Positions 13,576 to 40,500 of a stretch of DNA of 64,000 nt are shown here, in pieces. The position numbers and the translations under genes are program-made. This DNA is from Monocercomonoides exilis PA203 (taxonomy: Eukaryota; Protista; Preaxostyla): NCBI GenBank assembly GCA_001643675.2, contig LSRY02000041.1:620001-684000 (forward strand), written 5' to 3'. The notes beneath the pieces are model-generated. The model ran no database searches. It saw only the letters and a list, made by a program, of their open reading frames with translations, and was not told the DNA's origin. Numbering within the stretch: the stretch's first letter is position 1; every line of letters begins with the position of its first letter.

Positions 13576-13661
13576 ATATGAAGGTGGATGACTATTTTTT
13601 TAGAAAATATCAAGTATTACGGTTTTGCACACACCTTAAATAAATAATTATTATCCATGTG

Positions 13662-14476: not shown

Positions 14477-14829
14477 ATCGAGAAGATTAAAAATTGAGTC
14501 AATTATTGTTGACTTTTAACCAAAACTTGTTGTTGTTATTATTGAAGAATTACTTTTTGACATTCATAAACAATAATTTTTTCAAAATTTGTTGAAAAAC
14601 TATTAAAAACACAAACTGTTTGAATCTTATATATGTGAGACATTTCAATTGACATATATTCGTAAATGCTTTTGTGTGCATTTCTCATTGCTTATTACTA
14701 TTCTTTACCTGAATTTTTGTACATGATAAAACGCTCTCATTTTTTACTAATGTTTTTTGAAAAATTATTTGTTCCCTTAATAAATGTTGAAAAACAACAA
14801 ATTATCATTATATCAATTTGGTGATATAG

Positions 14830-17800: not shown

Positions 17801-20800
17801 GGAGTGACACAACAATGGGGCTGTTTCCACTGAATGTGTATTTGGATTCATATCCAGATGCAGTTCATGTGGGGAAGGGGAAGGATGGGGTGGGTGGATA
17901 CGACTCGTGGTTCTGTGGGTTTGACTATTATCCGTGTGCGACCATCACCCATGCAGCGCAGGTGAGATATCCAGGCACAAACAAGAAGATCGAATTGGAT
18001 TCAGGATATGAGCTTTGTGAGGCAGTTGGAATGACAGATGGCTGTGAATGGGAGATTTCCTGTGCGAGAAAAAGGATGGAAGTTGGGGTGAAAGCACCAG
18101 AGAATTCTGAGTCATCTTGTCTGATTGATGTTCAGAGCAAATGTTCAATGAGAAACATCAAGTTCTGTATTCCATCAGCTCTATCTGGTGCATCATCATC
18201 ATCTCTGATCACATCCAACTCCACACTCCTCACACTCATTGACTGTTCTATTGCTTGTTCATCTGAGAATCCCATTGGATATTGTTTTGTGAATGTGATT
18301 GGGGGAAAAGTGAAAGTGGAGGGATTGGTGATCACAGAGACCTTGAGATTTGGAGAGCATTCAGTGATTGAGTTTAGTGAAGGGGTGGAATCAGTTGTGT
18401 TTTGTGGATGTGAGGTGAACAACATTGAGAAGAGAAATGGAGATGGGGGATGGGTGAGTGGGGTGGTTGGAGCAGAAGGGGATGAGGGGAAGAATGGGAT
18501 AATTGTGATTGAATCGTGTGTTGTGAAGGGGTGCAGGTGTGTTGGTGGAAGAGGAGGAGGGATGAGTGTTGTTGTGAAGGGGGAAGGGAGTGTTGTTGTG
18601 AATGGGAGTTGTGTGATTGATGGGTGTGAGGCGAAGGGTTCAGAGGAGAGTTCAGAAGGGAGAAGTGAAGGGAGAAGTGAAGGGAGAGGGGGAGGGATGA
18701 TGATTGTGATGGAGAGCAGGGATGGTTCAATGAAAATGGAATCTGGAATTCAGAGTTTGTTTGGAGAGGATAACAAAGCTTCATATGAGAAGGATGTGTT
18801 TGTTGAATGTGGGAGTGGTGTGTTTTTGGAATCGAAAGTGAATGGGAGTTCATTTTCATTTTTTGATTTTGGTGTGATTCCATCAGATGTTGTGAAGTTG
18901 TGTGGGAGTGAGGATGGGAGAGAAGGGGAAGTGATTCCGCTGTTTGTGTATTTGTGTTCAATTGGAACAAAGCTGAGAGTTGATGGAAGAGGAGAGAGGG
19001 CACTGGATCAGAGCCATTGTGGGTTTGAGGAGTTTGGGTGCCTGACGATTGACTATTGTGTTGAGAAGAGAGCGAGCATCAATGTGAATGAAATTGAAGT
19101 TGCCTCAGAATCATGAATAAAGAGTGAAATGAAAGTGGTTTCATTTGGAGTGAGTGTTTCAGGGAAAGAAGAAGGGATGAGGGTGGTTGTGAGGGATGAA
19201 GGATTGATAAATCAAAACAACCTTATTGAGTGCACAAAATCATTTGAGATGAGATATTTGGCATTTGTGCTGAACGATGAGATGAATGGGAGGAGAAGTG
19301 GATTTATCCACTCTTCCTCATCATCATCAACTATCACAATAACCAGCTGTTCAATCTCATTTGCATATGACGATTTGATTGGATTCAATGTGATATGTGT
19401 TGATGGAGGAGGGTTGGTTGTTCATGGATTTATGATGGAAGGGGGAGTGAGAATGAGTGGGAAATCGCCAATTGTTGTTTTGAATGGAGTTGAATTGGAG
19501 ATGAATCACAGCCGAATGAGTGGAGTTGGAGTGACAGGTGGGAGTGGAGGAGGAGGAGGAGGATGTTTGAATGTGGAGATGGGTGTGAATGGGATTGTGA
19601 ATATTGAAGGATGCAATTTGTCATCAGTGTGTTCAGGAAGGAGTGGGATGAAAGGGGGAGGGATGAAGATATCAGTGGGGAAGGGAGGGATGTTGGAAAT
19701 GAAGAATGTGAAATATTCAGGATGTGAAGTGCCATCAGAGGATGTTGAGGAAAGAGGGAGAGGAATGGGAGGAGGGATGTTTGTGAAGCTGGCAGATGAG
19801 ATGGGAACATTTGTGATGGAAGGGATGGAATTTGAGGGATGTGATGGGTGGAAAGGGAAGAATGTGTTTGCTTCGGGATGGGATCTGAGCGAGGTTGTGA
19901 ACAAAGAGAACTTCAAATGGGAGATAAAGGAAGAGGAATTAGGATCATTGGATGAATTGTGCGGGTGGGAGAGGAAGACGACAGGAGAGGAGGGATATGT
20001 TATTCCATTGGTCGTTTATTTGTGGAGCAACTGGAGTGGGAATGGGTTTGTTTCGAGAGAGAAAGGAGGAGACTTCAGTGGGTGTGGGTTTTCTGAAGCA
20101 CCATGCTCATCGATTGACCACTTGATATCACTTCGATATCCAACACTTGGAGAAGGGGAAACACATATTGCCATTGTGGGATCAGGGTTGCTGAGCCATT
20201 CCGTTTCATTTTCATCATCAATTTCAGAGTCACCAAAAGTGGTGATTGAAGGGACAAAGAAAGGGACAGGGGTGACGATCAGTGATAATGAGGAAAATGA
20301 TCTGGATGATGGTTCAATGATATCCTCGAATGTGAGTCTGTCATTTGTGAATGTGTCATTCACCAAGCCAGCCATCACCACCCATCATGAAGTGTTGATT
20401 GAATCCTCTGGAGCAAACACATTATTGTCAGTTTCAGATTGTTCATTTGGGTCAGGGAGAGGGGCGGCAGAAAGTTTTGGATATTATGTGATGAGAGTGA
20501 ATGGGGGGAGTGTATTGATTGAGAGGTGTTCGTTGAGTTTGATTTCAGAGTTGAAAGGGTTGATTTCTTTCAGCTCAAGTGCAACCGAGGTGACTGTTCA
20601 GAATGTGAACATTTCATTTGTTGGAGTGGTTGAAAGAGGCCTGATTTCGATGATAGATGATAAAAACCAGATGAATGGAGAAAAGAAGGTTATTTCAAAT
20701 GGCAAAATACCAGTTTTGAGGATTGTTGGGTGTTTATTTTCCAATATAACAAACGAAAGAAATGGAGCGAGTGTCATTGATGTGGGATCATTTGAAGATG

Positions 20801-23800
20801 GAGTGGAGTGTGTGGTGGATGAGTGTTCGTTGTCGAGTTGCAAGAGTGGTTTGAGCGTTGAAGGAGGTGGGATGAGAGTGGGCTGAAGAGTGAAGAATCA
20901 GTGTTGAAAGTGAATGGGAGCTCATTTTCGATGTGCAAGTGCTCGAGTGAAACAGGGTTTGGAGGAGGGCTGTTCGTTGATGGGTCTGACCCACATGCAA
21001 ATTATGGAAATGAGAGTCAGATTCCGCATCTGAATTTCAAGATTGTGAATATCCTGTTTGTGATGAATGAGGCACATGTGGGGAAAGACATATTTGTCAG
21101 ATGCCACTCGATTGCTCATCAGATCAACGAAACACTGTTTGCGCTGAACTACAACCAGGAGTCACTGAACTCGAACAACTCGATCTGTGGGAGGGATGGT
21201 TGGAGCGAGGGAGATGTTGATCTGATTCCGCTGATCACATTCTATTATTCGGCACAGGTGTTTGTGAGTGGAAGAGGGAGTGATGGGAGGGGATGTGGAT
21301 CACAGAGCAGTGCATGTGCGAGCATCAACTGTGGGGTTGAGCACATACAAGAAGGGGTGATGAATGCGATTCTGATTGATGGGGAAGGGTTTGTGACAGA
21401 AGAATGTGTGATTGGAGATCTTGTTGTGAATTCATTGAAAAAGACACAGGCGATTGTGAGATTGAATTCCAAGATTGAGAAATCATTTGAGAAGGATTGC
21501 ATTATGGAGTTTATAAATGAAAGCACTGTGGAGAGGTGCTCATTCCAGTTTGAAGAGACATTTAAGTCAACTCACAGCTTCATCATGAAAGTGAGGAATG
21601 GAATGACGAAAATACAAGAATGTGAATTCTTCTCTTCTCAAACAACAACAGTTGAGTTCATGAAGTTGAACAGTTCAGTTGTGAGCGTGGAGAGTGGAGA
21701 GCTGAAGATATTTGATTCAACTTTCAGGGATTTGGATTCAACAACCGCAGTGCTTTTATTCAACAAAGAATCGAATGTGACAATTGATGAAGCAATTATT
21801 TCAAATATCGAATGTGAGGGAGATGTTGTGAGTGTTGGAGGGAAAGCGAAAGTGGAGATGAAAGAGATGGGAGTTGAGAATGTGACTGTGTTGTTGGAGG
21901 GGTGTGTGATTGAGATGGAAGATGCTGAGCAAGAGGTGAGTGCGCTGAACAGCTCATTTGGAAAGTGTGTGAATTTGGTTGATAAGGGAAGCATGATGCA
22001 GATCAGGAATTCCAAGAATGTGAGGGTTGAGATATGTGTGTTTGATGGAGAAAAAGAAATCGAGTTTATCAATGAAGAAGTTGAAAGAAAAAAAGAAGAG
22101 GGATTGTGCAAATGGAATGGGTCATTAGTTGGCGTTGAGAAGAGCAATGTGGAGATGAGGGAAACAACAATCAAAAACAGCAAAGTTGGGGGGTTGTGTG
22201 TGAGTGGAGGGAGTGTGAAGATTGAAAATGGAAAGTTTGAGAACAACAACCCATCAATTGAGGGATATCCATCATCTCGAAGGAATGCGATTTGTGAAGG
22301 GAATGGGGAATTGAATGTTGTGAGTGTGAAAGGGGGAGATGGATGGAAGTACAACTCATCATTGTGGATATTGGATGAGGGATGCGAATTGGGAGGGATA
22401 GCAACTGAAAGAGGATCATCATTTTTCATCCCTGTTTTGGAAGAGGTGAAGAATATTTCTCAGCCAAATGGAGATGCGGAGTTGATGATTGTGGGAAAGT
22501 TGCTTCTACCATGTGATTTGTCAGTGAAGATGAGCAAGAAAAATGGGGATGAGGAGGAGATTGTGAGAAAGGGAATTGAAGAAGAAGGGTTTGTGTCAGA
22601 GAATGAGATTCACTCAGTTATTTCATGTTCAGAACTGGAGAAAGTGAGAGAAGAGACAGAATTGAGTGTGTGGATTGTGTTTGGCAAAGGAGATTCACCA
22701 TCATCAACAGAGCGATTTATTGTGAAGAACAGTAGTGAAAGTGTTGGAAAAGGAGATGAAAGGATTGTTGAAGGAGAGAAAGAAGGGAAATCATCATGGG
22801 CTGTTTTTTGTCTGATATTTGTTGTTTTGTTTTTGATTGTTCTGATTGTTGCTGTTGTTCTAGCCGTTCGATGGAAGAAGGCAAAGAATGAAAACAAAGA
22901 TCTGAGAGAGATTGTGAATGACACAGTGAGGAAGGATCCGAAGGCGTTTGAGATGGTGACGATGGAGATGTCGCCAGAGGAGCAGTGGAGGAGAGCAGAA
23001 AGGGAGGCTGAGAAGAAGAACGAAGAGAGGATGAAGAAAAGAATAAATGGAAAGGAGATGGTGCATTCAGAATCTGAAGAGTACCTTCTATCTGAAAGTG
23101 GCTCCACTGAATATATATTGGGAAAAGATTCAGACAAGATTCCTGAATGGGCATTGGAAAAGGTGGATGAGGAAGAGATAAGGAAGAGAACACCATCACC
23201 ATCCATTTCATCTATCTCATCCACTTCAACAACTGATTCAGATTCGACATTTGTTCGTGGGGAGGATCTGTGTCCAACCACCTCATCAATGTCAAACCTG
23301 GTGGATGCGATGGCCTGTTCGTCTCCTCATGAGAAGCTGATTGTGGACTTGAGGGATTCGCTGTTCATGCTGCTTCATGGGAGGAATGAGAAGAAGGAAA
23401 TGGATATTGGCAGCCTTGAACAAAGAGAGATTACAGCTGCGCAGGTATTGTTCTGGGTGGCTAATCTGGCGCTCCACTCGTTTGATGAGATGGAAAATGG
23501 ATTATCATCTCTTTCCACTCTGAATCCTCACATTGTTCTCTTCTCAGAGCACATGGTGATCTGCATTGCAATGCATTCAGACTTCTCTTCTGATGATTCA
23601 GATTCCTCATCCATCTCTTCATTGAGCATTGTTTCTTCTTCCTCGAATATTTCAGTGATGAGCGAGAGATTCACAGACTCGCCTCCGCCCTCGTCTGCGT
23701 TTGAGGATGAGAATGATTTCAAAAAAGAGTGCTTGAGGTGGAAGGCGCCGGAGCTGTTGATCAACAAGAAGATGGGTGCAACAAAGGAGTCAGTTTCGTT

Positions 23801-24176
23801 CTCGATTGGGATGATGCTGTGGGAGTGCTTGACACTGGATATCCCGTTTGGGGAGTATGATGCGGAGACAGCAGGGCAGAAGATTGTGAATGGGGAAAGG
23901 CCGAGCATGAGCAAAGTGGAGGGATGTCGTCTGAAGGGAATGGTGGAGAAAAGTGTCATGGTGCAGAGGCCAGACAGAATAACGCTTTGGGAGATGAAGA
24001 GAGAGTTGATTAAATTGTTTCCAGCAAATGCAGCGATGGTGACAGTGACAGATGCGCTGTGCTATGCAGGCAGAAAGAGCGAGGCGAGACACGAAAGCCG
24101 TGTTCGAAGTGGCAGCAGAATAGTGGAGTGTGTTTTAATTGATGAGCACAAAGACATTATTATTGTTGGTAATTAG
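14830..24176 (+). pseudogene. Giant receptor-like surface protein gene (signal peptide, Cys/GGG-rich beta-helix-like ectodomain, one TM, kinase-like tail), interrupted
   Basis: ORFs 14830..19116, 19129..20886 and 20901..24176 are one gene broken by an in-frame TGA (19114-19116) and a 1-nt frameshift near 20881. GGAI/GGG plus Cys repeats, TM AVFCLIFVVLFLIVLIVAVVLAV, and LRWKAPELL / FSIGMMLWECLTLDIPF motifs. Confidence 0.8.
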
Positions 24177-25973
24177 AACAGCCCAAACAACAAAAGCGAG
24201 AGAAATTGAAAAGACGATTTCGATAAAAATGTAATGTGTATGCATGCATGTATGTATGTTTGTATGCATTTTATAAATAAATCATTTATGGACGAACACT
24301 GAAGCAGTGATGGTTCATTTGTTGCATATTTTTGTGTGTCTGATTGTGAACACACTCTCTTGATTTATTGGAAAGATCGTTTGCTTATATTGGCTCATAT
24401 GATGCTTATGATTGATGAGCAAAGTGTGGAAATGAACAAGTTTCCGCTTTCAGTTAATGAGTTGAGAGGCTATTTTCAAAATCATTTATGTGTGGATATT
24501 TATCGAATTAAGTTTTTTTTTTTAAAAAAGAAAATAAAAAATTAGATTGACTTTTATTTCTTTTTTTTTTATTTGGATTTTGTGTTTCTTATTTGAATGA
24601 TTTTTTTTTCGAATTAAACTTGTTTGTTTCACGAATTTATATGTAATTAAAAAGCCAAGTTTTTATTTCTATTTGTGTATGTATGCTGATTATCATCCTT
24701 GGCCATTAAAAAAAGACACTTTCTGTATTTTCATCCTCATAGCATTATGAATGTTTGCAGTCATTTTGAATGGATGGGTATTTTCATTAAGACATTACGC
24801 ATCAAACTTCATGTTTTTGTTTGTTTGTTTATTTAAGCAAGATTTATGAAAAGGGACGGGGTGATTTTTTTGTCAGGACAAAAAAAAATTTTTTTAAATC
24901 AGGATAAAATTAAAAAATCGTGTAACACGGCAAGTTTTCGAATTAAAATTGCAGTAACCTCTATGGTCGTATCTCGATATCTGTTGCATCCATTCATACA
25001 TTAAAAATAAAACTCAACACTTTTATTAATTTTAAAAGGAAATAATATGTTGATTGTTTAAGGACTCCGTTTTTGTTCAATTATTCTATTTTTTATGAAG
25101 CATCTTGATTCGACTTTTATTGATAAATCTAATGATTTCTGTGTAATAAGAAGTTCTTGTTGTTTTTTCATCTTCAACAATTTGTTTATTTTTTTTTCCC
25201 TTTTTTTCGGATAGAATCGGAAATAATCCTCTTCGAAAGAACACAGTCAACAAAATCACTTCTAAAATTATTTATGAAAAGTTCAGGGGCTTTTCTCTTC
25301 AATTGTCACAAACAATTGCAAAAATAAAACAGTATGGCAAGTTGCAACTTTGCATTACATTCAGAAACTCATTTGTTTTTTGGATTATTTTGGATAAAAT
25401 GTTTATCTTTTTGTTTTCATTTTTAATCTTGTCATGGGCGAATTTTTCTTTTTTTTTTTTGCAATTCATGTATTTTCCATGAATCATATCAAAAGCTCGA
25501 AAATATACCAATTACCCCAATTATTATTCAAAATTGTTAAACTTATTATTCGAAATTAGTTTTTTTGAGTGTTATTGAATTTGAAATTTGTTGAGTCAAC
25601 CTGGTTATTGGCTGAATGTGTGAAAGAGAACATAGTTAGTTTCATATGGGTTGTTATTTTTGAAATCATAACTTTTTTCGGTGAGATATTTTTTCAAAAA
25701 TTGTTTGACTGTGAAAAAATTTTGTATACAAATTGAAAATTTATAACAACTGTTGGAAAAAAAGATGCTTTTGCTCAAATAAAGATGATGATGTCTTTTA
25801 AAGAACTTTTTTAACTTTTCAATGAACTTTTGTTAAAATTCAAAATAAATTTTCGAACAGAAAATTTTCGAATGAAAAAATATGATTTCAAAAATAATCA
25901 CACATATGTGTGATTATTCGCAATGTTGCTAATCTTCAAACGCAAGGAGCAGATTTGCTCCTCAACAATGAGT
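22383..25973. repeat. Left arm of the ~3.3-kb inverted duplication (contains an extra 260 bp at 25647-25906)
   Basis: Reverse complement of 31210-34542; mirrored ORFs 24173..24355 / 32570..32752 and 22610..23281 / 33644..34315 translate identically. Confidence 0.97.
25647..25904. mobile_element. 258-bp MITE-like element with imperfect TIRs, flanked by TA within CATATG
   Basis: Left end TGGGTTGTTATTTTTGAAATCATA versus reverse complement of right end TGTGTGATTATTTTTGAAATCATA (21/24). It is cleanly absent at the equivalent site of the right arm (31275-31280). Confidence 0.75.
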
Positions 25974-26006
25974 TCTGAAATCCCTCACTCTTTTTATCTC
26001 CTCTGA

Positions 26007-27637
26007 TCAAAAACCCTCCTGCCTAGCACGCTCTAGTGCGGCGGATGAGTTGAGAGCGTGCGGCTGATGGTGCGGAACTCCTGCTCTATACCCTCTCTCT
26101 CTCTTGGGATATCTTTGAGGAGACATCAGTCTGGCCCTTGCCTCTTCAGTGTCATTACCTATCTGTCCAATACTTCTTCCGCTACGCCTCTTCCGATCTT
26201 TGCCTCTCTTCTTCAGCAGAGTTGTGTCCTTTACTCCAGTCAGCTCACTGATGTGACTGGGGATTATGGAGGGTGTCTTCTGGCGACTCGGTTGTCGGGA
26301 TGCTGAGTTTCGTGGCTTAGCCGTCTCACCTCTGTTTTCTTCTCCACTCGGCAGTTTCTTTCTTCCTCTTGATCGCTTTCTCGTAAGCTTCTTCCCTATC
26401 TCAGATCCCGCTTTGGGTAATTCCTCTGTGCGATCTTTCATATCTGCATCTGCTATCTCCAGCGTCCCCTCCTTCGTGTCTCCGCTCCTATCTGTCTTAT
26501 AATCTTCTCCCCTCTGGAGTACTGATCCACATATTGTCTCCAGGATCCAATTTGTGTCCTGTACCAGAAACACGGTATAGTATTCCTGGGCCACTCTCGA
26601 ACCAGGTGCCCATCTCGCATACGCATTGATCGCCTTCCAGTCCGCTCCTTCTCGTCTTGCTAAGTGTGAAATCACTGCGTATCTTATAGAGTACTCGTTG
26701 AAAGTTTCGGGAATTTCGTTCTCTCTCAAAATAGCAGTTAGTTCTTCTTTGATCTTCTGTAGGTTAGCGGGCCTACTCCCTTCTATGTCGAACCACACAT
26801 GTTCACTCTGAAACGTCGTCTTTGTATAATCCATCCAGCGTTGGAGCGCCTCCACTGCATAGATACGTGGATTTGGACGTTTATTTATTATTACTATGAA
26901 AACCTCACCTCCAGACGTCTTGATTCGAACTTGTGTCTGTTCTTTATTTTTTTTAAACATCGTTGTCTCTCTTCTCATTCTTTCCAGCTCTGCTGGCCTT
27001 GAAGCACCGAAAATCATGGTCAGGATGAGAGCTCTCCTTTAGAGGGTCTGTGGGTCCGTCATCTCATGGGTGGCTTCTGCCCATTTGGTGATAATTGTAA
27101 AATCCCACTTTGGTTTACATCATTTGCCCTTTCTCGGCTTCTCTCCCATATCGGTTCTTTGAAATATCTCTATATCCTTAATTCCATTTTCATCTTCTAA
27201 AAAAGGTTAATGGAATCCAGTTCTTTCCGTACTGTCTGATGAATCAATCCACTTGAGAGGTTCGTATTTGAAAGTGTTTCAGTGAACTTTGCCATAATCC
27301 ATTTAGCATCTTTGGTTGTGATGGGAACGGTGTCATCCATGCTCTCCCAATCAAGGAATTGTTTGAATCTTCGCAGTGCTCTCCACGTATATCTTTCCCT
27401 CTTCTGGTTTTTCAGTATTGCTGCTGCTATGTCTTTTTCTCCCACTTATTCTCCCAATGTTTGGAAGAGGTCCCTTCCTTGTATATTCTCTTCTCCAGTG
27501 TGACGCATATCACCTCTCCTGGGGGTAGTTTCCAGCCTTCCCTCCTCATCCTGGCTCCCTGAATCATGCACTCCTGAAAGGTCCCCAGGGTCTTTATCAA
27601 ATGCCCAGGCTGCAGAAGCGGGGTCCAGGTCTGCCAC
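26007..27637 (-). pseudogene. Tyrosine recombinase of the DIRS-like element
   Basis: GASRPAEL (catalytic R), YSIRYA (HxxR box) and ARWAPGSRVAQEYY (W...catalytic Y). The catalytic domain is open in 26007..27017; the upstream part is broken by stops and frameshifts. Confidence 0.85.
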
Positions 27638-29671
27638 CTCCAGGCCGGCAGAATCAGAATCGTCAGTTCCCTCTGGGCTTCCTTCATCTTCTCTTTCAGG
27701 GTCCGTCCAATGTTTCTCAGGAACGGGTGGACTAGCACTATCTCATTTTCTCGCATTTCTCTCTCTCTCTCTTCCTTCTCACGGAGGATAGTCTCCAAAT
27801 CCTTCCGCAGGGCACCGGAGCAATCGGTTCTAAAATTGTATCTGGTGTTCTCGGTGCGATTGTTTGTACTATCTCTGCGACTTTCTTCCCCCTCAGTGCA
27901 TAATCCGGCTTTCTTGCCATCCGGCTGAGTGCACCTGCTTCCGTGTTCTGTTCTCCCGGGAGGTGTTCCGTTTGTATTGTTATGTCCAGGCTGTTCAGTT
28001 TCTTCTCTTATGCTCTCAGTGTTGGAATGAGCGATGGCACTCCCCTTTTCTTCTGAATCGTCCATCTCGTGGACATGTTGTCTGTCTTCAGATGAATATG
28101 ATCTATCTTCTGTTGTTGCAGCCATGCTCCCTTTATCTCTGGTGTCCTCAACACTGCTCAGGACTCCTTTTCGTTTATCGCTAACGCACTCTCCTGGAGG
28201 GTCCAACTCCCGTGGACATATATCTTCTCCTCTTTGTTCTCCCTCGTTATTGTTAATATTGCACCCCATCCCAGCTCTGAGGCGTCCGTTGTTAGTACTG
28301 CTGGTCTGTTCCTTCTCTTCAGACTCCTTGGTCTGTTCTGAAGCAGGACCTTCCTCCAATGTGTTAATTCTCCCAGCATCATTGGGTTAACTATTACCGT
28401 CCCCTTCCATCCCCCGCGGTCTATTGCCTGTTTCAGCATGTATTGCATTCGCATCGTCCACAAGCTCGCTGATGGGTGTTGTTACCTCACAAAATTCAGC
28501 CTCCCGAGGAGTGCTGCTAAGTCCCTCGTCTTTTGTCTCCTCCTCTTCTTTGCCAGTCCTATCCATGTTCGCATATCCTCCAGGAGCAGCACTCACTTCC
28601 TCTCCTGGAGCATTACTTCCATCTTCTCTGAGTTCAATAGCCATCCCAGAAACTCCACTCTCCTTCTTGTTCCAACTTCAGTTTCTCTTCCGACAGTGTC
28701 CAGCTTAGATTCCTCAGGAACTGGGCTATCTCCTGTGAGATCGATCTCAAAACTTCCCTGTCTTTGTGCATGAGAAGCATGTCGTCCAGGAATATTACTT
28801 GCTTCACTTTCCCCTCTTCTCTGATATATGACGCTGCCCTTCTCATTATCTTCGTGAATACTCTGGGCGCATCTTTCGCTCCAAATGGCATCACTGCATA
28901 AGCGTAGCATTGACTTTGAAAGCTGAAGCACAGGTGAGGGCTGAACTGTTCGTCCACTTTGACATCCTTGTATACACTCGATATATCCAGAGTGGTCATC
29001 CAATCGTTCTCCTCCAGGAGTTCCACTACTGTCACCTGGGAATCCATCTTGAAGTGTATTCCCTGCACTTCCTCGTTTAGAGCTCTGCAGTCCAGAATTT
29101 TTCTCCACTTTCCGTTTTTCTTTCGCACCGTGAATGTCGGGTTGAACCACTTCACCTCCGACTCCTGAATGGGCTTCACCACTCCTTCCTTCAATTCCTC
29201 CTTCAAGAGGGATAAATAATTGCTCGTCATCTCCTTCGTTCCCCGAAACTCTTGTCTGTGTTTTCTCTCCTCGAGTGAGATTGGGGATTGGTAACTTTTC
29301 CATCGAGCTCTTATACCACTACTCACAAATTTGTCTCCCCCAATCTTCTTCCACTCGCTCAGCCTGTTCACTAGTCTCCCAGGCAGTGGTTTCCTCAGTG
29401 GTTCAATCGCTTCACTCCTCCTCAATTCTGGCGTCTTGTGGCCATGCTGCATCTGTGTATTCCCTTCTCCTTCGAAAATGTCTGCAATAGCTGTCTTCGA
29501 GCTCACCTCCAATGTACTCCCAATTTGGAACTTGATAACAATCCCAGAAGCTCTCCAAACTATCTTCCCGTTCCCCCTCTCGCTCATCTGTCTCGTCACT
29601 CGGGGATATGCGGAGTCTTCTTCTGTTCTCGTTGCCTCGTGTTGCACATCTTCTCTCGATATCCCCATCAA
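27427..29671 (-). pseudogene. Reverse transcriptase - RNase H - methyltransferase-like polyprotein of the DIRS-like element
   Basis: RT: KKNGKWRKILDCRALN, LDISSVY, MPFGAKDAPRVFTK, FLDD, EFLGW. RNase H: TDASELGWGA, INEKE, TDN, HLPGEQNTEAGALSR. MT-like: LVHPF...ILILPAWRWQTW...LPPG. Several stops and frameshifts. Confidence 0.92.
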
Positions 29672-29897
29672 ACAACCCCTTCTGATTTCTCGTTCTCACT
29701 CCTTCCATTGATCTAACGAGCTCAGAGTCTCTCTGATATTGACATGCTGTTTCTGAATTTCCGTCTCTGATCGCTTCTCGCCCAGAGCTACTGTTTCTCG
29801 TTGAATATTCATTTCGCTGTAATTTGATTCTTTATCTCTTCTCTCTCTGTGTTGCAGCAAAGCAAGGCTCTCTTTTCTCTCTCAACTCTCGCGACCA

Positions 29898-31128
29898 TTA
29901 GTCGGCTCCAATTGTTGATTCCACAGCTGTTCCCCCTTGTGTCCTTGGTGAGGCTGGGTGCAATGGTCCAGTGATTTGAACAGGCCTCCCAACGATGGTT
30001 GGGACATACTGAGCTTTGAACTTGGGCGTTCTCTTCATTCCTTTGAAGTCGGTGAAGGTCCTTACGAATCCCCTTCTCTGGAGTTGTCTGTGAACAAAAC
30101 CCCGGGTGCACCTTCCTGAACTGTGTCTTCTCGGGGGCTCACTTCTGGACGTTACATCCCCGAAACCTGTTGTTGAGTCGGGAGATGCATCGTATCCTGT
30201 TGCATCTCCCTCTGCTTGAAAAAAGCTGGTGCTCTCTACTAGCTTCTTCAGGTTATCCGGCACATCTTTCAGACATTCCTCCTTCTAAAAAAACCTTTCG
30301 CGCTTTCCCAACTCGATTGGGGATAACATTTAGTAGGTTAATTCTGCTGATTCAGTCGGCGATAAGCGCATATGCACATAATAATCCTCTCAATCGTTCC
30401 TTCTCCTCTTCCATGAGGTGCGCCTTCTCCAGTTCCTTCACTGTTAGTGATGCAATTGCTTTTGCTGCTTCAAAGCCTGATTCGAGGGCCGGCTGGAGGA
30501 TTTCAATTGCTCGGCTCGCTTCCGGTGAGTCCTTTCTTCCTTCAACAGTGACCCCCATCACTGCCAAGGCGTTCCAACTTGCATCTGTGTGTCTGGTGAA
30601 AAAGTTCTTTTCCGTCTCTGGAATGAATGGATTTAAGATATCATCGTTTATCCTGATCGATCCGGCCTGGCAAAACTCCATAAATCTTTTCAGTTCACCC
30701 GCCTGTCTCCTGGGCGTAAGCCATTCGTCTGGGAAAATTCCCAAAAAGTCTTCAGATCTTTCCTGCTCTTCTTCCCGCTTTTCTGTCCTTCCGGAATCGT
30801 TCTCGCTTGTTTCTTCTTCGTCCCATCTCTTCATCTGGTTACGTTAGCGACTGCCCCTCAATCGCTGTCTGTGTCTCTTCTTTGCGATCATCTCTGTAAA
30901 ATTGGTTTCGGACTCAGATTCCCTTTATCTCGTCAGAGATCTTCTTCTTGGCCGTTCCTTCTTCGTCTTTCTCATTGGTTATATTACTTCTGCTCCAAAG
31001 TGACTTAGTCCTCCTCTGCTCCTCAACACTTCATCGATCCAGTTTTCAACTTTTTTGAGCCTTTGAACAAGATCAAATTCCTTTTCATCTCCAACTCTGT
31101 TCGACTGTCTAACATGTTCTTGTTCCAT
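29898..31128 (-). pseudogene. Putative gag-like ORF1 of the DIRS-like element
   Basis: ATG at 31128 is in frame with ORF 30352..30834 through three TAA stops and continues by frameshift into 29898..30263. The assignment is positional only. Confidence 0.6.
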
Positions 31129-31209
31129 TCCGACTGCAGACAATAATGTTCACGAAAATGTGAGTATTACAGAAGTCTGATCAAAAACCACCCATTCTTA
31201 ATGATAAAT

Positions 31210-34200
31210 ACTCATTGTTGAGGAACAAATCTGCTCCTTGCGTTTGAAGATTAGCAACATTGCGAATAATCACACATATGAAACTAACTATGTTCTCTTT
31301 CACACATTCAGCCAATAACCAGGTTGACTCAACAAATTTCAAATTCAATAACACTCAAAAAAACTAATTTCGAATAATAAGTTTAACAATTTTGAATAAT
31401 AATTGGGGTAATTGGTATATTTTCGAGCTTTTGATATGATTCATGGAAAATACATGAATTGCAAAAAAAAAAAGAAAAATTCGCCCATGACAAGATTAAA
31501 AATGAAAACAAAAAGATAAACATTTTATCCAAAATAATCCAAAAAACAAATGAGTTTCTGAATGTAATGCAAAGTTGCAACTTGCCATACTGTTTTATTT
31601 TTGCAATTGTTTGTGACAATTGAAGAGAAAAGCCCCTGAACTTTTCATAAATAATTTTAGAAGTGATTTTGTTGACTGTGTTCTTTCGAAGAGGATTATT
31701 TCCGATTCTATCCGAAAAAAAGGGAAAAAAAAATAAACAAATTGTTGAAGATGAAAAAACAACAAGAACTTCTTATTACACAGAAATCATTAGATTTATC
31801 AATAAAAGTCGAATCAAGATGCTTCATAAAAAATAGAATAATTGAACAAAAAACGGAGTCCTTAAACAATCAACATATTATTTCCTTTTAAAATTAATAA
31901 AAGTGTTGAGTTTTATTTTTAATGTATGAATGGATGCAACAGATATCGAGATACGACCATAGAGGTTACTGCAATTTTAATTCGAAAACTTGCCGTGTTA
32001 CACGATTTTTTAATTTTATCCTGATTTAAAAAAAATTTTTTTTTGTCCTGACAAAAAAATCACCCCGTCCCTTTTCATAAATCTTGCTTAAATAAACAAA
32101 CAAACAAAAACATGAAGTTTGATGCGTAATGTCTTAATGAAAATACCCATCCATTCAAAATGACTGCAAACATTCATAATGCTATGAGGATGAAAATACA
32201 GAAAGTGTCTTTTTTTAATGGCCAAGGATGATAATCAGCATACATACACAAATAGAAATAAAAACTTGGCTTTTTAATTACATATAAATTCGTGAAACAA
32301 ACAAGTTTAATTCGAAAAAAAAAAATCATTCAAATAAGAAACACAAAATCCAAATAAAAAAAAAGAAATAAAAGTCAATCTAATTTTTTATTTTCTTTTT
32401 TAAAAAAAAAAACTTAATTCGATAAATATCCACACATAAATGATTTTGAAAATAGCCTCTCAACTCATTAACTGAAAGCGGAAACTTGTTCATTTCCACA
32501 CTTTGCTCATCAATCATAAGCATCATATGAGCCAATATAAGCAAACGATCTTTCCAATAAATCAAGAGAGTGTGTTCACAATCAGACACACAAAAATATG
32601 CAACAAATGAACCATCACTGCTTCAGTGTTCGTCCATAAATGATTTATTTATAAAATGCATACAAACATACATACATGCATGCATACACATTACATTTTT
32701 ATCGAAATCGTCTTTTCAATTTCTCTCGCTTTTGTTGTTTGGGCTGTTCTAATTACCAACAATAATAATGTCTTTGTGCTCATCAATTAAAACACACTCC
32801 ACTATTCTGCTGCCACTTCGAACACGGCTTTCGTGTCTCGCCTCGCTCTTTCTGCCTGCATAGCACAGCGCATCTGTCACTGTCACCATCGCTGCATTTG
32901 CTGGAAACAATTTAATCAACTCTCTCTTCATCTCCCAAAGCGTTATTCTGTCTGGCCTCTGCACCATGACACTTTTCTCCACCATTCCCTTCAGACGACA
33001 TCCCTCCACTTTGCTCATGCTCGGCCTTTCCCCATTCACAATCTTCTGCCCTGCTGTCTCCGCATCATACTCCCCAAACGGGATATCCAGTGTCAAGCAC
33101 TCCCACAGCATCATCCCAATCGAGAACGAAACTGACTCCTTTGTTGCACCCATCTTCTTGTTGATCAACAGCTCCGGCGCCTTCCACCTCAAGCACTCTT
33201 TTTTGAAATCATTCTCATCCTCAAACGCAGACGAGGGCGGAGGCGAGTCTGTGAATCTCTCGCTCATCACTGAAATATTCGAGGAAGAAGAAACAATGCT
33301 CAATGAAGAGATGGATGAGGAATCTGAATCATCAGAAGAGAAGTCTGAATGCATTGCAATGCAGATCACCATGTGCTCTGAGAAGAGAACAATGTGAGGA
33401 TTCAGAGTGGAAAGAGATGATAATCCATTTTCCATCTCATCAAACGAGTGGAGCGCCAGATTAGCCACCCAGAACAATACCTGCGCAGCTGTAATCTCTC
33501 TTTGTTCAAGGCTGCCAATATCCATTTCCTTCTTCTCATTCCTCCCATGAAGCAGCATGAACAGCGAATCCCTCAAGTCCACAATCAGCTTCTCATGAGG
33601 AGACGAACAGGCCATCGCATCCACCAGGTTTGACATTGATGAGGTGGTTGGACACAGATCCTCCCCACGAACAAATGTCGAATCTGAATCAGTTGTTGAA
33701 GTGGATGAGATAGATGAAATGGATGGTGATGGTGTTCTCTTCCTTATCTCTTCCTCATCCACCTTTTCCAATGCCCATTCAGGAATCTTGTCTGAATCTT
33801 TTCCCAATATATATTCAGTGGAGCCACTTTCAGATAGAAGGTACTCTTCAGATTCTGAATGCACCATCTCCTTTCCATTTATTCTTTTCTTCATCCTCTC
33901 TTCGTTCTTCTTCTCAGCCTCCCTTTCTGCTCTCCTCCACTGCTCCTCTGGCGACATCTCCATCGTCACCATCTCAAACGCCTTCGGATCCTTCCTCACT
34001 GTGTCATTCACAATCTCTCTCAGATCTTTGTTTTCATTCTTTGCCTTCTTCCATCGAACGGCTAGAACAACAGCAACAATCAGAACAATCAAAAACAAAA
34101 CAACAAATATCAGACAAAAAACAGCCCATGATGATTTCCCTTCTTTCTCTCCTTCAACAATCCTTTCATCTCCTTTTCCAACACTTTCACTACTGTTCTT

Positions 34201-34542
34201 CACAATAAATCGCTCTGTTGATGATGGTGAATCTCCTTTGCCAAACACAATCCACACACTCAATTCTGTCTCTTCTCTCACTTTCTCCAGTTCTGAACAT
34301 GAAATAACTGAGTGAATCTCATTCTCTGACACAAACCCTTCTTCTTCAATTCCCTTTCTCACAATCTCCTCCTCATCCCCATTTTTCTTGCTCATCTTCA
34401 CTGACAAATCACATGGTAGAAGCAACTTTCCCACAATCATCAACTCCGCATCTCCATTTGGCTGAGAAATATTCTTCACCTCTTCCAAAACAGGGATGAA
34501 AAATGATGATCCTCTTTCAGTTGCTATCCCTCCCAATTCGCA
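31210..34542. repeat. Right arm of the ~3.3-kb inverted duplication
   Basis: Reverse complement of 22383-25973 minus the 260-bp insert. The only differences I saw were homopolymer lengths and one substitution in the 71-bp inner repeat. Confidence 0.97.
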
Positions 34543-37500
34543 CCCATCATTCAGAATCCAAAGAGATGTGTTTGGCAAGACTCCATCTCCTCCTTTCAAG
34601 CTGACAACATTCAACATTCCACAATTCGAGCAGATGATGTTCCTTCGAGCCGAAGGATATCCCTCAATAAAGGGGTTGTTGTTCTCAAATTCTCCTTTTG
34701 TTATGGAAAGAGAGCCATCTGAAACTGATAACCCTCCAGCTGATGAATTCGATATTGTTGTTTCTTTCATCATCACAGAACTCTTCACCATATCCACAAG
34801 AGACCCATTCCATCTGCAAACTTCTGATCTATTCTCAACAATGTGATTCTCTTTTGCATTTTCAGAATCGCCATCAAAGATGCACGAATCAACAAGTGCA
34901 TCCACACAAGAAAAAAAGCAAATCATCTTTCCTTTCTCGATTCTTGATGAAGAGTTGTGCATTTCACAATTCGACAAATCCACATTTCTTCTGTTGCTGA
35001 TAAAGACAAGAGGATAATTTCCTGTGAATGAAACATTCGAAACAACACATTCAGACAACACAGCTTTCATATCAATATTGTGCGCTTTGTTCTCTGCTCC
35101 ATCCAAACGGATGATGCTCATCTGACTGTTCGTGTTGCTGATTGTCACTTCCTTCATCGAGAAATCTTCGTTCAAAACAACAAACAAATCTCGAAGAGAT
35201 TTCACATACTCAACAACAACTGAACGGAATTGACATGTTCCTCTTTTGAATGTGCACAAAGTCGTTGCATCAATTCTCTCGACTGACACTTGGCCGAGCA
35301 ACAACACCCCACCTTCCATCCGGACAAGCTCATTCAAAGAAGCTTTTGAATTGACGCTCTCTGGCTTGAATGCAACATCAGAGACCAACATGCTGCCTTC
35401 ATCAATTTCCAGAATAACCTCATGACTCGAAGAAAATGAGTCTGCAAATTGGAACTCAACTGACTCCAGGCGATTTCTTCCTGCAGCTTTAATCAATGCT
35501 GGGCCAACAGCAGGAATAGCAGATAAAACAATTAGCTTAGCTTTTGTGAAGCTCTTCGATTGGATGGTGATATCATTCAGCTCAACCTCCTTCTCAATCT
35601 CACATTGCTCGTCAATGGCCACGACTCTCAGGAAGTCTCCCGCAAGATGGCCAACACCATATCCAAGGGATAAACAAGGATGGGTGCTTGTACCACACTG
35701 CCGATCATTTCCTCCACCATTCCCAAAAATGTTCGAAACAACAATCGTGGCTGACTGGTAGATCGTGATCAGATCCATCAGATCAGCTGGCTCAGAGAGT
35801 GTCGGATCAATCCCAAATATCGCATTCAGGCGGATATAAGAGTCTGCCCTCAAATCCATCACAAACTGTGTCTCGTTGATTTGGTTCGAGATGTTTGTGC
35901 ATTCAACGAAAATATCTCTTCCCACAAATGCCTCGTCTCCTGAAAACGTCACATTTTTGAACAGAAACAGCAACTCTCCTCGTTCCACACATTTCAAATA
36001 TCCTCCACCTCCTCTTCCGCTTGAGACAGAGCAAGAGCATTGAGCAATTCGTGTCTCTTCCACTCTCAGTGAGCCATCCGAGCTCAGCGAAAAGAAGACG
36101 GCTCCCCCTTCCTCAGAAGAGAGTGCTTTGCACGACTCCATTGACGAATTTCTCACAACCATTTCGACACCACTGCTGCAATCACTCTTGCACACACACG
36201 ATCCATCATCAGCCCTTGAAACCGAAAAGAAGGTTGATTCATTGATATTGATCACAGTGTTTGCATTTTCTCTGTAGACTTCATCTGAATCCTTCACATT
36301 AATAATGCTTCCACTCTCGATTGTGGATGAAAGAATGCTCAGTTTGTTCATGCTGCATTCACATCCATCAAACACATCGAATATTCCTTGTTTCGTGTTG
36401 ATCCTCTCCACCTTCAGATTATCAGCATTCATCTCTCCTTTCACCATCTCCACAAACAAGTGGTTTTGTGCCACATTGTCCGAGTTTGTTGAAGAAAACC
36501 AGCACTCTTCAAACGTTAAAGTTCCATCTTCGTTTTTCACAATGATTTCTTCTCCATTTTCACATATAAACTCCACTGATAGAATTATCCACGAAAATAT
36601 CAGAGACTTGTTGTTTCTGATCAATCCTTTGCCTTCCGCTCGTTCTTCCTGGCTCACGGCTAAAGTCGAATGGCTTGCATCCACTTCAGATGCTGTTCCA
36701 GAGCATATCTTGAAGTCTGAAAGAACAAAGCTTTCCTTCAAAACTGTCTTGTTGTGAATAATCATCTCCTTCTTTGTCTCGCTCTGATCAATCTGTTGCA
36801 TCCCCTTCCAGAAAGAAAAGCATGGATCATCTGCACTTCCACATCTCTTCACATCAAATCCAAGTGAAGAGACATGAATCTGAGAATTCGAATAACTCAC
36901 AAGAAATCTGAAGAGATTTGAGTTGTTAATTGTTCCGTCACTCCCCACGAACAGATTTGATGAATTTTCCATTGAAGAATAATCAAACACGAATGAAGAT
37001 GATTTCACAGTTGTGTTCAAATCATTCGACAAAATGAAAAGATGCTCTCCAATTTTCGCCTTATTGCCTTCCAACACAACTGCCTCAAAAACAAAAGGAA
37101 TTCCAATTTCTGAGTTCGAGCAGTCAACATAAAGAAATCCACCTTTTCCTGTTGTCTGTGAGCATTCACAGCTCTTTCCTGTTGTTCTGTTGAGAATCAA
37201 TTGTTGCTCTGCTTTCAATGAGATTTGAAGCGCTCCACCTTCTGCTCCATTCTCTGTTTTATCTCCAGATATATCGCATTCTTCAATCACAGCCGAAGAC
37301 GAAGATGCAGAAATGGGTGTGAAATCAAACTTCAAATTGACAATTGTGCAACGAATCAGCTCAAATGTTCCTCCATTTGCAGAAATCAGTGAAAACGAAA
37401 GTGTGCCTTGCTCCTTTGCTGAAAATGCACAATCATTCAAGCACAGCCTCCCATTTTCAGTTGAAGACAAAACCAGAACTTGACGATTGGTGCTGAATTC

Positions 37501-40500
37501 AGATGGCAATGCGAATTCAACAAGGCAAAATTGCAGATTCATCGAATTTGTGATGATCGCAGAAGATGAGTCAGAACCGATTATTTCAGAAGCAAAATCA
37601 AGCTTCTCATGCTCTTCAGGGACAGAGGACTTGACTTCGAAATTGGACAGATCATATTCGTCTTGGATGACAACGTTTGACCCAATCCACACAATTCTGT
37701 TCGGAGAACTCAAATTGGCATTTTTCACACCTCTCCAGAAAGACGAGCAGGGATGACTCAGACTGCTACACCCAGCCACATCAAAGCCATCCTGTTCGAC
37801 AAACACCTCATCCGAATGGTATTTCACCAGAAATAGAAGCAGATCAACTGCTTCACCGTAAAATCTTTTGTCAATGCCTTTCATATCCACAACAGAAAAG
37901 CCATTTTCGTCGAATAAGTTGAAGGCGAACCGATTCTTCCTCGCTGTTTGGTTCAGATCAGAACAGCTGACAAACATATCCCTCCCACACCAGGCGTTGT
38001 TTCCCCGAAACTCCATTTCTCCAAATTTGAAGTTGTTTGTGGAATCATCGCTCAAACAAAGAAAAATGCCTCCTCCTCTTCCACTTGTCTCACTCGCTTC
38101 ACATTCACTTATCTCAACGTTTTCCATATCGAACCTGTTCTCAGAAATAAGCTCACACTTGACAACACCTCCATCACTGTTGAGCGACTTGCTTCTCACA
38201 AATTCGCATCCTCCTGAAATCGATGCCTGCTCCACATTCCTCAAAAGAAACATTCCTCCATCAGAAGTCGAGCAGTCAGCAATACTCACTGCCTTTGCTT
38301 CAAAACTTTCCCCTTCAATTTCTTGGATCAATCCGTCTCCTTCAGAAACAACATGAGATGCATTCAGATTGTTGATCGACATCTCCCCTCTCTCCAACCA
38401 AGCTATTCCGAAGCTCGACAGAAAAGTCATATGTGAAAGGGCAACGCTCTCAAGACAAATTTCTCCTCCCACTCCAATGGCAATCCACATCCTTTCTGTT
38501 TCTTCAGAGCCTTCTCCTCCTCCAAACTCACAATTCAACATTGTCACTCGTCCGCCATTCATCTGAATCACTCCAACGTTTCCTTCTGCTGGAGAGACAG
38601 GAAGCTTGAAGACAAGTCTGTTGAGCAGAAGCACTGTTGGTGTGAGGCTATCAACCACATTGAAGAATCCGCTGCTTTCTATTCTCAGCTCAGATTTGGC
38701 TGCAACCCCACGGATCGTCAGCGACTTCCCATCTCTTCTCATCTCTCCAAAAACCCAATTGTGGTTGTTGATCTGGACAGTCGTCTGGTTCTCTTTCAGG
38801 TTGCTGACACCAACCTCCAGTCGATCACATGGATTCGCATCGCTTCCGCAGTTCGGCAACGTGCTTTTCCCTGCCTCCACGAAAACAGTGTCTCCTGTTC
38901 CAGAAAACAAATATTTCTTGATCGAATAGTCAATTGCCGGGCTTTCAACAGAATCCATCACCCAGAAACTAGGCTCAGGCGTGTTCAACTCGTCGATTGT
39001 CCCAAACCACAGATCTTCTTTCATCAGCGCTTCTGGATTCCTGCAAAGCAGAAACAGGTCATTTCCCTTCGAAGCAAGGTTTCCTGTGAAAGTGTTCGAT
39101 TTCATCGAGTACTGCACATTCGCATCGAATTTCAGATGCAACCCTCCTCCATACCCCCGAGCTCCCAGCGCTGTGCAGCTCTCCACTCTGTTCTGAGTGA
39201 ATATCAGCTCTCCTCCATCCGACACATTCAATGCCCCCATCCCGCCAAATGGAACCTCGCCTTGGCACATGTCTTTCGAAAACACACAACCACTGATCTC
39301 CACTCGCTTTCCTTGCCCAACAGCTCCCGAAATGACCGAGCCATTCCCGCTGTTGCTGGTCACATTCGACAATTCACTCGATGCAACTTTCATTCCATTT
39401 CCTTCCCCAAAAGAAATAACACTGCCACTTTCCAGTGTTGAGCCATTGACTGTTAGCTTCTTGATGTCAGCTGAAGATTCGCCAGTCAAGTGGATCAATC
39501 CATTATGCGTCAGACTCTCAATCTCTTCAAAAGTGCATCCTGCAACAAATAATGATGTTCCTTGTCCACTCAACTCAACTGCAGCAACTTCCCCAAAATC
39601 AATTCTTTTCAGCTCAAATTCAGTCAAATGCACTTCACCTCCTGTTGCACAAAGAATACTGAATTTGATTGCCTCGCTTTCTATTTGCCTTGTCGCTGAG
39701 CAATTAGTAATTTTCAAAGCTGATTGCTGGCACAGAATCAGACACAATCGAGAATTTTCAATGAATCTTGGAGGCAACGAAAAAGAGATGTTCGAAATCG
39801 ACACATCTGCTGCTGTTTCGATCAATCCATCCCCTTCCCCGATTCCATTGCTGCAAACAAAAACAGATGAATCCTTTGTTGTTGCCAAAATTGAAACAGA
39901 ACACGAGGCAAGCCTTGTGCAGCTGTCCATCTGGAATGATGGGAGTATCTCAACAACTCCTTGCTCTTGCGCTGATACTAACCTCAATTCAACAAGTCTG
40001 CCGATCGTGTGGCAAGGAGCAAATGCGAATCCGCATCCCGAGTGATCGTATCCTCCATCTTCCTCACCCCCAACATATCCGCTTCCTGAAAACGAAGTCA
40101 GAAATGCAGCCAAAGGAATAGCAAAATCTCGATTGCATGTGACTCGCTCATATCCCATCAAATCCGTTTTGTCCATCTCTCTCCAAGCAATTTGGAAGTT
40201 ATCTGTTCGGACTGCTTCAGTCAAATTGATGGCATCCACAAAGACATTGCTTCCTTTCCACGCTTTGCACCCAGAGAATGTCAGGTCTTTCAGCAAGCAC
40301 ATTCCATTGTTATCTGAAACATGCAAATATATCCCTCCGCCCAGTCCTCTCCCTCTATCTGCTGCTTCACCAGCCGGAACATCACAACTGCTGAATCTGG
40401 TGTTCTTCACATTAACATCCATATTCCCCTGTTTCTGGACAAACAAAGCTCCTCCTTTCAGTTCACTCCCCTCTTCACACGATGAACTAATCTGACATCC

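Follow-up and report, generated by a model that had tools for sequence, protein, structure and literature searches.

Organization of the locus

The window analyzed here is a stretch of 64,000 nucleotides from the genome of the oxymonad Monocercomonoides exilis PA203 (C38:620001-684000, contig LSRY02000041.1, in an assembly of 82,301,135 bases and 101 contigs). Within it lies a 12.2-kb palindrome in which two giant receptor-like genes, here called gene A and gene B, meet tail to tail across a retroelement that forms the loop. Each arm carries the last 132 residues of an ectodomain, a transmembrane segment (TM), a 465-residue cytoplasmic tail predicted to be a pseudokinase, and 1.47 kb of non-coding 3' untranslated region (UTR) and flank. 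An initial annotation, made from the letters of the window, had described much the same content (about 135 residues of ectodomain, TM, tail and about 1.5 kb of non-coding DNA). The genes and arms are as follows.

14830-24176, plus strand: gene A, an A-type giant receptor-like gene, putative donor of the arm and probable pseudogene
22383-25646, unstranded: arm A, with coding sequence at 22383-24176, TM at about 22794-22880 and 3' UTR plus flank at 24177-25646; 0 substitutions against arm B
22382-22393 (mirror 34543-34532), unstranded: outer recombination junction, placed by three-way informative sites and segment identities
31277-34542, unstranded: arm B, an inverted copy of arm A without the miniature inverted-repeat transposable element (MITE) described below; coding sequence at 32749-34542
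32749-45043, minus strand: gene B, intact, the putative recipient chimera, B-type down to 34543 and with the A-type arm from 34542

In a base-by-base alignment, 22383-25648 and 34542-31275 show 0 substitutions in 3,266 nt, which upholds the proposal of two near-identical inverted arms. They differ only by 6 nt of poly-T length, spread over five sites (24561, 24601, 24889, 25070 and 25449), the residual error type expected where short reads cannot polish a repeat. BLAST pairs a slightly longer tract, 22225-25658 with 34699-31265, at 98.5% identity, with all of the substitutions outside 22383/34542. The inner limit of arm A had been drawn at 25973; the arm does run through 25648, but 25649-25973 consists of a 258-bp MITE, the remnant of a MITE terminus and the 58-bp inverted terminal repeat (ITR) of the retroelement. 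At the outer edge, identity in 100-column windows drops from 100 to 77, 69 and 60% inside 300 nt. Immediately beyond 22383/34542 the DNA is about 70% identical, and then falls to background, as the annotation had implied in calling the two genes diverged paralogues from that point on. It had also reported an abrupt, in-frame and homologous end to the identity, and we can now place the switch within 22382-22393: both outer junctions are in frame, at SLWIL-(D/N)(E/D)-GCELGG, and by segment identities they lie at the downstream edge of a juxtamembrane block that is conserved between the two subfamilies.

Gene A begins with a signal peptide. An intact A-type paralogue of 3,041 aa is collinear with it and matches it by tblastn in two pieces, in different frames and without an intron-sized gap. 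The reading frame of gene A is interrupted by an in-frame TGA at 19114-19116 and shifted by 1 nt near 20881-20883, and the gene is probably a pseudogene. Both of these disabling lesions lie outside the arm, and none lies within it. Gene B has a 4,029-aa open frame (44838-32749) and would encode about 4,070 aa overall, from a predicted exon 1 at 45043-44902 (carrying the signal peptide), a 73-nt GT..AG intron at 44901-44829 and an exon 2 at 44828-32749. Pfam gave no significant match to the ectodomain of either gene; a Beta_helix domain (PF13229) was found by Pfam in paralogues only.

The receptor family and its tail

Genes A and B belong to the largest gene family of M. exilis, which has been described as 'protein tyrosine kinases' of the tyrosine kinase-like (TKL) group (PMC6759080; PMC8767320). 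All close protein relatives of genes A and B are MONOS_ proteins of M. exilis, and the last open reading frame (ORF) of gene A, used as a protein query, found paralogues only, at no more than 80% identity. A search of the genome with the tail returned 1,434 candidate places. The idea of a 'constant' signalling tail did not survive across the family: 89 scored paralogue tails are 72-80% identical to that of the arms, and among the scored tails 100% identity is confined to the two arms. Outside M. exilis the relatives found are just two short metagenomic proteins (P0135 and P0137, 35-37% identity), and the family is otherwise lineage-specific in the databases searched.

The C-lobe of the tail (APE to alpha-F) is the only part with a match, to Pkinase at E 0.002 and to integrin-linked kinase (ILK), a known pseudokinase, at E 0.005; paralogues carry matches to PF07714. 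Throughout the family alignment the catalytic-loop position reads L-S-T-L-N-P-H and the DFG position H-S-D-F-S, and the tail has neither the HRD Asp, nor DFG, nor the Gly-loop/VAIK Lys of an active kinase. Since the catalytic-loop and DFG positions are replaced family-wide, we read the tail as a pseudokinase on sequence grounds.

Gene B as a chimera

Upstream of the junction, genes A and B belong to different subfamilies. The 300 residues of gene A before the junction are 70-90% identical to A-type genes on contigs C26 and C21, those of gene B are 93-95% identical to a B-type gene at C38:607k, 12 kb upstream of the window, and between genes A and B themselves the identity is there only about 21-63%. 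Within the arm, the first 132 residues match A-type genes at 82-92% identity and all other genes at 36-55%. At sites informative between gene A and the closest paralogue of gene B, gene B follows the paralogue at 419 of 440 sites before 22383 (gene A at 11 and neither at 10), and follows gene A at all 531 such sites after it.

The phylogenetic trees agree with the site counts. In the tree of the upstream region, gene A falls in the A-type clade (Shimodaira-Hasegawa-like approximate likelihood ratio support 100) and gene B in the B-type clade (99), where its ectodomain is sister to that of the C38:607k gene (94% amino acid identity); a clade of A plus B upstream of the junction is rejected by the approximately unbiased (AU) test (p 3.7e-39). 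For the part of the ectodomain inside the arm, the two genes, being identical, nest within the A-type clade (97), and grouping with B-type genes is rejected (AU p 7.9e-54). Gene B is by these comparisons a chimera, with a B-type ectodomain and an A-type juxtamembrane, TM and tail module. Tail swapping, as the initial annotation had proposed, is upheld by the rejection of the non-chimeric trees together with the clean breakpoint. Since the arm follows on from gene A without a change of type but is alien to gene B, parsimony favors a single replacement in the direction A to B. A 600-aa query centered on the chimeric junction brought up no partial protein model of near-identical sequence from the 454 assembly made earlier; its best match was at 58% identity.

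Comparison of ectodomain and tail trees across the family, which had been put forward as a check on swapping, gives incongruent topologies and shows the tail segments themselves to be mosaic. The cytoplasmic tail shared by the two genes is placed with another gene set, away from the A-type tails (support 96). In the activation loop (window about 23580-23880), a serine-rich insert exists in two versions, which are distributed among the paralogues regardless of ectodomain subfamily. Together, the grouping of the tail with a non-A-type set and the discordant insert versions indicate that older segmental exchanges took place within the tails of this family.

The retroelement in the loop

The loop and its parts are listed here.

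25916-31267, minus strand: degenerate DIRS-like tyrosine-recombinase retroelement, 5,352 bp, bounded by comparison with genomic copies and by its aligned termini
25916-25973 and 31210-31267: ITRs of the retroelement, 58 bp with 1 mismatch
26007-27017, minus strand: tyrosine recombinase (YR) ORF, Pfam Phage_integrase
28634-29671, minus strand: reverse transcriptase (RT) ORF, Pfam RVT_1
about 29886-30996, minus strand: gag remnant

About 24 other genomic copies, 79-85% identical, delimit the loop as one retroelement. That it encodes an RT and a YR, as read originally from the sequence, is correct: the RT domain of the window copy matches RVT_1 at E 8.3e-22, and its recombinase matches Phage_integrase at E 2.1e-5, just below the Pfam cut-off, with an above-threshold match (E 9.5e-12) in another copy, L002. 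ITRs, 58-61 bp long, are shared by the window copy and five of the six others compared.

DIRS-order elements are tyrosine-recombinase retrotransposons, of which the DIRS1-like ones have inverted terminal repeats. The element in the window resembles the DIRS1-like elements in having gag, RT and YR on one strand, ITRs, and no obvious target-site duplication; it differs from them in that its ITRs are short, at 58 bp, and the copy is dead. Pfam detected no RNase H or methyltransferase domain in it. The copy L002 (L002:2251-7616, C20:1012350-1017715) is apparently intact, with a gag of 369 aa and a pol of 1,405 aa that includes Phage_integrase, and the family may still be active. Judged against that intact copy, the window copy has at least four frame changes and at least ten stops in the pol/YR frame, damage which marks it as old and dead. 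As it is both 79-85% identical to its relatives and heavily disrupted, the element would also be older than the arms.

The arms run unbroken into the ITRs of the element. Around six other copies of the element we found no mirrored host flanks, and most likely the element contributed nothing more than passive inverted homology to the palindrome.

A unit of about 700 bp with ITR-like bounds adjoins the recombinase end of six other copies (L001:7622-8321, L002:1553-2252 and equivalents) and is also found by itself (259 candidate places genome-wide); its appearance is that of a non-autonomous derivative that shares the repeats of the element. We considered the unit as a sign that the left flank had been replaced at the locus, and rejected this idea, as the unit is a separate, abundant non-autonomous element and is uninformative on direction.

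The MITE at the inner edge of arm A

Two further features lie between arm A and the retroelement.

25647-25904, unstranded: Stowaway-like MITE of 258 bp, in arm A only, TA-flanked within CATATG at 25643-25648 and 25903-25908
25907-25918 (mirror 31265-31276), unstranded: 9-12 nt remnant, matching the terminus of the MITE exactly and abutting the retroelement, from direct reading of the sequence

The MITE has terminal inverted repeats (TIRs) of about 21-23 nt that start with TGTGTGATTATT, and it is flanked by TA on both sides, where the empty arm B has a single TA at the same position. It is short and non-coding and belongs to a family of high copy number (1,056 candidate genomic copies, the nearest 91% identical), and has with its TIRs and TA duplication all the marks of a Stowaway-like element, the type mobilized by Tc1/mariner transposases. 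Its predicted hairpin fold has an energy of -36.7 kcal/mol (z -3.3).

A 26-nt palindrome at window 25893-25918 consists of a MITE end, TA and the start of a second MITE, and the retroelement appears from this arrangement to have once inserted into a second MITE. The 26-nt sequence is present at three genomic loci; the other two are C1:1823017-1823042, about 1.2 kb downstream of the tail of another gene of the family, and C11:1479116-1479141. We also considered an older, spacer-less palindrome whose axis was formed by two mirrored MITE termini, with the element inserted centrally. We ranked this low, the corresponding 24-nt pattern being unmatched genome-wide at up to 2 mismatches.

Other palindromes of the family

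A search for further convergent pairs with identical 3' arms around YR elements had been suggested. Convergent pairs with identical 3' arms do recur in the family, but the spacers that we examined hold no YR element. Seven loci were taken from pairs on the same contig and opposite strands with identical search scores, a sample biased towards identical arms.

C21 (841133-861940): arms of 10.4 kb, the inner 6 kb about 100% identical, then patches of 96-98%, then 70-79%; spacer 93 bp
C10:1439-1453k: arms of 6.6 kb, 99.86%; spacer 743 bp
C26: arms of 7.6 kb, 99.4%; spacer 472 bp
C18: arms of 5.3 kb, 99.0%; spacer 118 bp
C8: arms of 2.45 kb, 99.6%; spacer 385 bp
C10:984-1010k, head to head: arms of at least 9.7 kb, 99.97%
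C5, head to head: arms of at least 9.7 kb, 99.93%

The arm cores at the seven loci are 99.4-100% identical, and the outer edges examined are all abrupt and all within coding sequence. No YR element is present in the spacers of the five convergent palindromes (the first five above). At C10, C26 and C8, by comparison with paralogues, the spacer is instead more of the 3' flank that belongs to one of the two genes. Fold-back should leave just such an asymmetry between parent and copy, and with plain flank as the spacer a central mobile element is evidently not required. At C21 the spacer is a fragment of the TIR of a MITE family whose members measure about 730 bp. We considered whether TIR elements seed all of these palindromes, and rejected this on account of the plain 3' flank at C10, C26 and C8. 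In the listed genome matches, family members with identical scores are always inverted pairs on the same contig and never direct repeats, with the single exception of C80:1150954.

Assembly and read support

The M. exilis assembly was made with Canu from Oxford Nanopore Technologies (ONT) reads (12.9 Gb, read N50 8.9 kb, about 150x; PMC8767320). We compared the region 30000-35999 with short Logan contigs from four of the eight sequencing runs that contain it. DNA contigs of 2016 and 2022 cover the end of the element, the arm and the part unique to gene B at 99% or better, and RNA contigs of 2024 lie on arm B, over the tail and the 3' UTR as far as 32117; no RNA contig lies on the element (30000-31999). 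One 2016 contig starts within the element and stops at 31280, the predicted branch point where the versions of the arm with and without the MITE diverge. Misassembly is unlikely, because the read N50 greatly exceeds the 3.3 kb of an arm, the loop has a unique sequence, and on the outside each arm is followed by a different gene.

Origin of the palindrome

We think that the palindrome is probably a young inverted duplication made by homology-directed DNA repair, one instance of a palindrome-forming process that is common in the genome, and not a cassette operated by a recombinase. In M. exilis, non-homologous end joining (NHEJ) is reported to be absent and a full homologous-recombination set to be present (PMC6759080), and the absence of NHEJ would channel breaks into homology-driven outcomes. 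In yeast, widely spaced inverted repeats have been seen to fold back in resected DNA and give rise to inverted duplications (PMC10164571).

The starting state may have been an A-type gene A and a B-type gene B placed tail to tail, separated by the old, dead DIRS-like element. Resection of a break on the side toward gene B would have exposed the right ITR, which could then anneal to the left ITR in a 58-bp fold-back and so set the inner end of the copied tract. Synthesis from there would copy the 3' flank, tail and TM of gene A in inverted orientation, which is that of gene B, until the growing strand was recaptured by gene B in its juxtamembrane coding block, which is conserved in A and B alike, giving the outer end. 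The C-terminal 600 or so codons of gene B and its own 3' flank would have been lost in the process and replaced by an exact inverted copy of those of gene A. The MITE found in one arm could be a later insertion, or its hairpin could have been skipped during copying. We infer the break, the fold-back or synthesis-dependent strand annealing steps and the role of the ITRs from the layout of the locus; the model would account for the abutment of the arms on the ITRs, the in-frame and homologous outer junction, the lost B tail and the presence of an old loop within young arms.

Several points weigh against this history. The MITE in one arm requires an extra step. The direction A to B is based on parsimony and leaves room for a lost third A-type donor or an older gene B chimera. 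Among the 2016 contigs listed, none bridges 34542/34543 by at least 31 nt. Read correction in Canu might also erase a few true differences between the arms, so that '0 substitutions' may slightly overstate their identity.

A further point against a young duplication is that most of the same facts are fitted by an old palindrome, formed around or before the retroelement, whose arms are kept identical by frequent arm-to-arm gene conversion while conversion misses the loop and the edge MITE, which are left to decay. We consider this unlikely. An old, decayed loop and an old MITE family (nearest member 91% identical) beside perfectly identical arms speak for such a history, but a cut-and-paste MITE moves without its twin, so the age of its sequence does not date its insertion. 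The two lesions of gene A, both outside the arm, fit it as well, but might likewise be recent. At C21, the alternation of 96-98% and 100% stretches followed by 70-79% suggests repeated conversion, and all of the arm cores examined are at least 99.4% identical, but these palindromes were found through identical search scores and the sample is thus biased to identical arms. At the present locus, moreover, the outer edge is a single clean switch, without a ragged or patchy zone.

It is highly improbable, in our view, that intact copies of the element provide a YR which works in trans at the ITRs of the dead one and either seeds the break for the duplication or flips the loop. There is at least one intact copy in the genome (L002), and the ends of the arms coincide exactly with the ITRs, but the local YR gene is disrupted, the spacers examined at other palindromes have no YR element, the other copies of the element examined show no duplication or mirroring of their flanks, and no element transcripts were detected among the RNA contigs at 30000-31999. 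The same disruption, together with the YR-free palindromes and the six element copies without palindromic flanks, speaks against the transposon-centered mechanism suggested in the initial annotation. Its other suggestion, an invertible cassette, finds no support either. An inversion switch of the Flp/2-micron or shufflon type has a functional recombinase in or beside the invertible segment, and inversion alters the coding or promoter sequences that are joined; here the pol/YR frame is disrupted, and because the arms are identical, an exchange between them merely flips the loop while both genes keep their sequence.

That the palindrome is an artefact of fold-back chimeric nanopore reads or of a mis-join across a repeat can be put aside as almost certainly wrong, since, although the assembly is a Canu assembly of ONT reads, the arms differ at homopolymers only, as where polishing cannot place reads, and 34542/34543 is unbridged in the 2016 contigs listed, 5.6 kb of unique sequence make up the loop, the long open genes into which the two arms lead are different, mirrored flanks and no spacer would be expected from a chimeric read, the 3.3-kb arms are far below the read N50 at high depth, the 2016 short-read contigs cover the element end, the arm and the part unique to gene B at 99% or better (one of them ending at 31280), and seven similar loci each have their own spacer and edges.

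Comparison with known systems

The ampliconic palindromes of the human Y chromosome have kilobase-scale arms of near-100% identity around a unique spacer, contain members of multigene families and undergo arm-to-arm gene conversion. The M. exilis locus is like them in its kilobase-scale, near-identical arms around a unique spacer and in holding members of a multigene family, but here the arms span only the 3' part of two paralogues, and continuing conversion is a rival reading only.

The closest likeness described so far is to Giardia lamblia, also a metamonad, in which the large family of variant-specific surface proteins (VSPs) includes 14 identical inverted pairs, with no identical genes outside inverted pairs and with abrupt divergence of the flanks (Adam et al. 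2010, PMC2996952). The Giardia pairs are head to head or tail to tail and a few kilobases apart (PMC2996952), and the features that define them, near-identical inverted copies, a unique spacer, abrupt outer divergence and recurrence in the family, are all found in M. exilis. In Giardia, however, whole ORFs are duplicated, whereas here identity begins within coding sequence and would fuse two subfamilies. The M. exilis locus also has longer arms, genes 10 times larger, a pseudogene as the putative donor and a retroelement as the spacer.

As to mechanism, the Alu inverted-repeat (Alu-IR) system in yeast, in which inverted repeats separated by kilobases pair within single-stranded DNA, and synthesis primed there back along the strand gives arm, spacer and inverted arm (PMC10164571), offers a parallel, the equivalent position here being held by the 58-bp ITRs, 5.2 kb apart. 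The fold-back systems of yeast and of palindromic amplification in tumors usually produce dicentric chromosomes, unlike the local, in-frame recapture in a paralogue that is inferred here. Trypanosome variant surface glycoprotein (VSG) mosaics and Plasmodium var genes are similar in the non-reciprocal transfer of a segment from a gene or pseudogene donor to an intact member, with the junction in conserved sequence (PMC6893398). They differ in that the module transferred here is the conserved tail and not the variable part, and in that donor and recipient are inverted neighbors; there is also no evidence at the M. exilis locus of programmed switching, expression sites or immune selection. In the paper library searched, nothing relevant on palindromes in Monocercomonoides came up.

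Implications

The locus is a case, resolved to the base pair, of reshuffling in a huge lineage-specific family, with over 1,400 tail-like matches across the 82 Mb of the genome. If the proposed repair took place, a single event would have put the TM and pseudokinase module of one subfamily behind the ectodomain of another, with a pseudogene as the donor and the ITRs of a dead retrotransposon as the hinge. Together with the other palindromes and the VSP pairs of Giardia, the locus suggests that metamonads, which reportedly have no end joining, may make inverted duplications routinely when they repair breaks; if so, some of the M. exilis genome sequence listed as 'unclassified repeat' would be accounted for.

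A bolder reading, which we offer as a long shot, is that the formation of tail-to-tail palindromes is a regular and selectable means of remodelling the largest surface-receptor-like family of M. exilis, with fold-back repair of breaks near MITEs or DIRS ITRs, where end joining is absent, grafting modules of a pseudogene or neighboring gene onto an intact gene and so producing new combinations of ectodomain and tail. Were it true, M. exilis would have a cassette-like way of diversifying the family, of a sort undescribed in oxymonads. The inverted arms might also yield a hairpin RNA that regulates the family.

Neighboring features in the window

Directly upstream of the start codon of gene A, at 13636-14502, is an inverted repeat that looks like an element of the fold-back type; its arms, of 373 nt each, are 93% identical and enclose a spacer of 121 nt. 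Further upstream, two long ORFs on the plus strand, at 49-5751 (1,900 aa) and 6058-9294 (1,078 aa), are unrelated to the receptor family, and the second of these has a weak match to a Vps39-type zinc finger.

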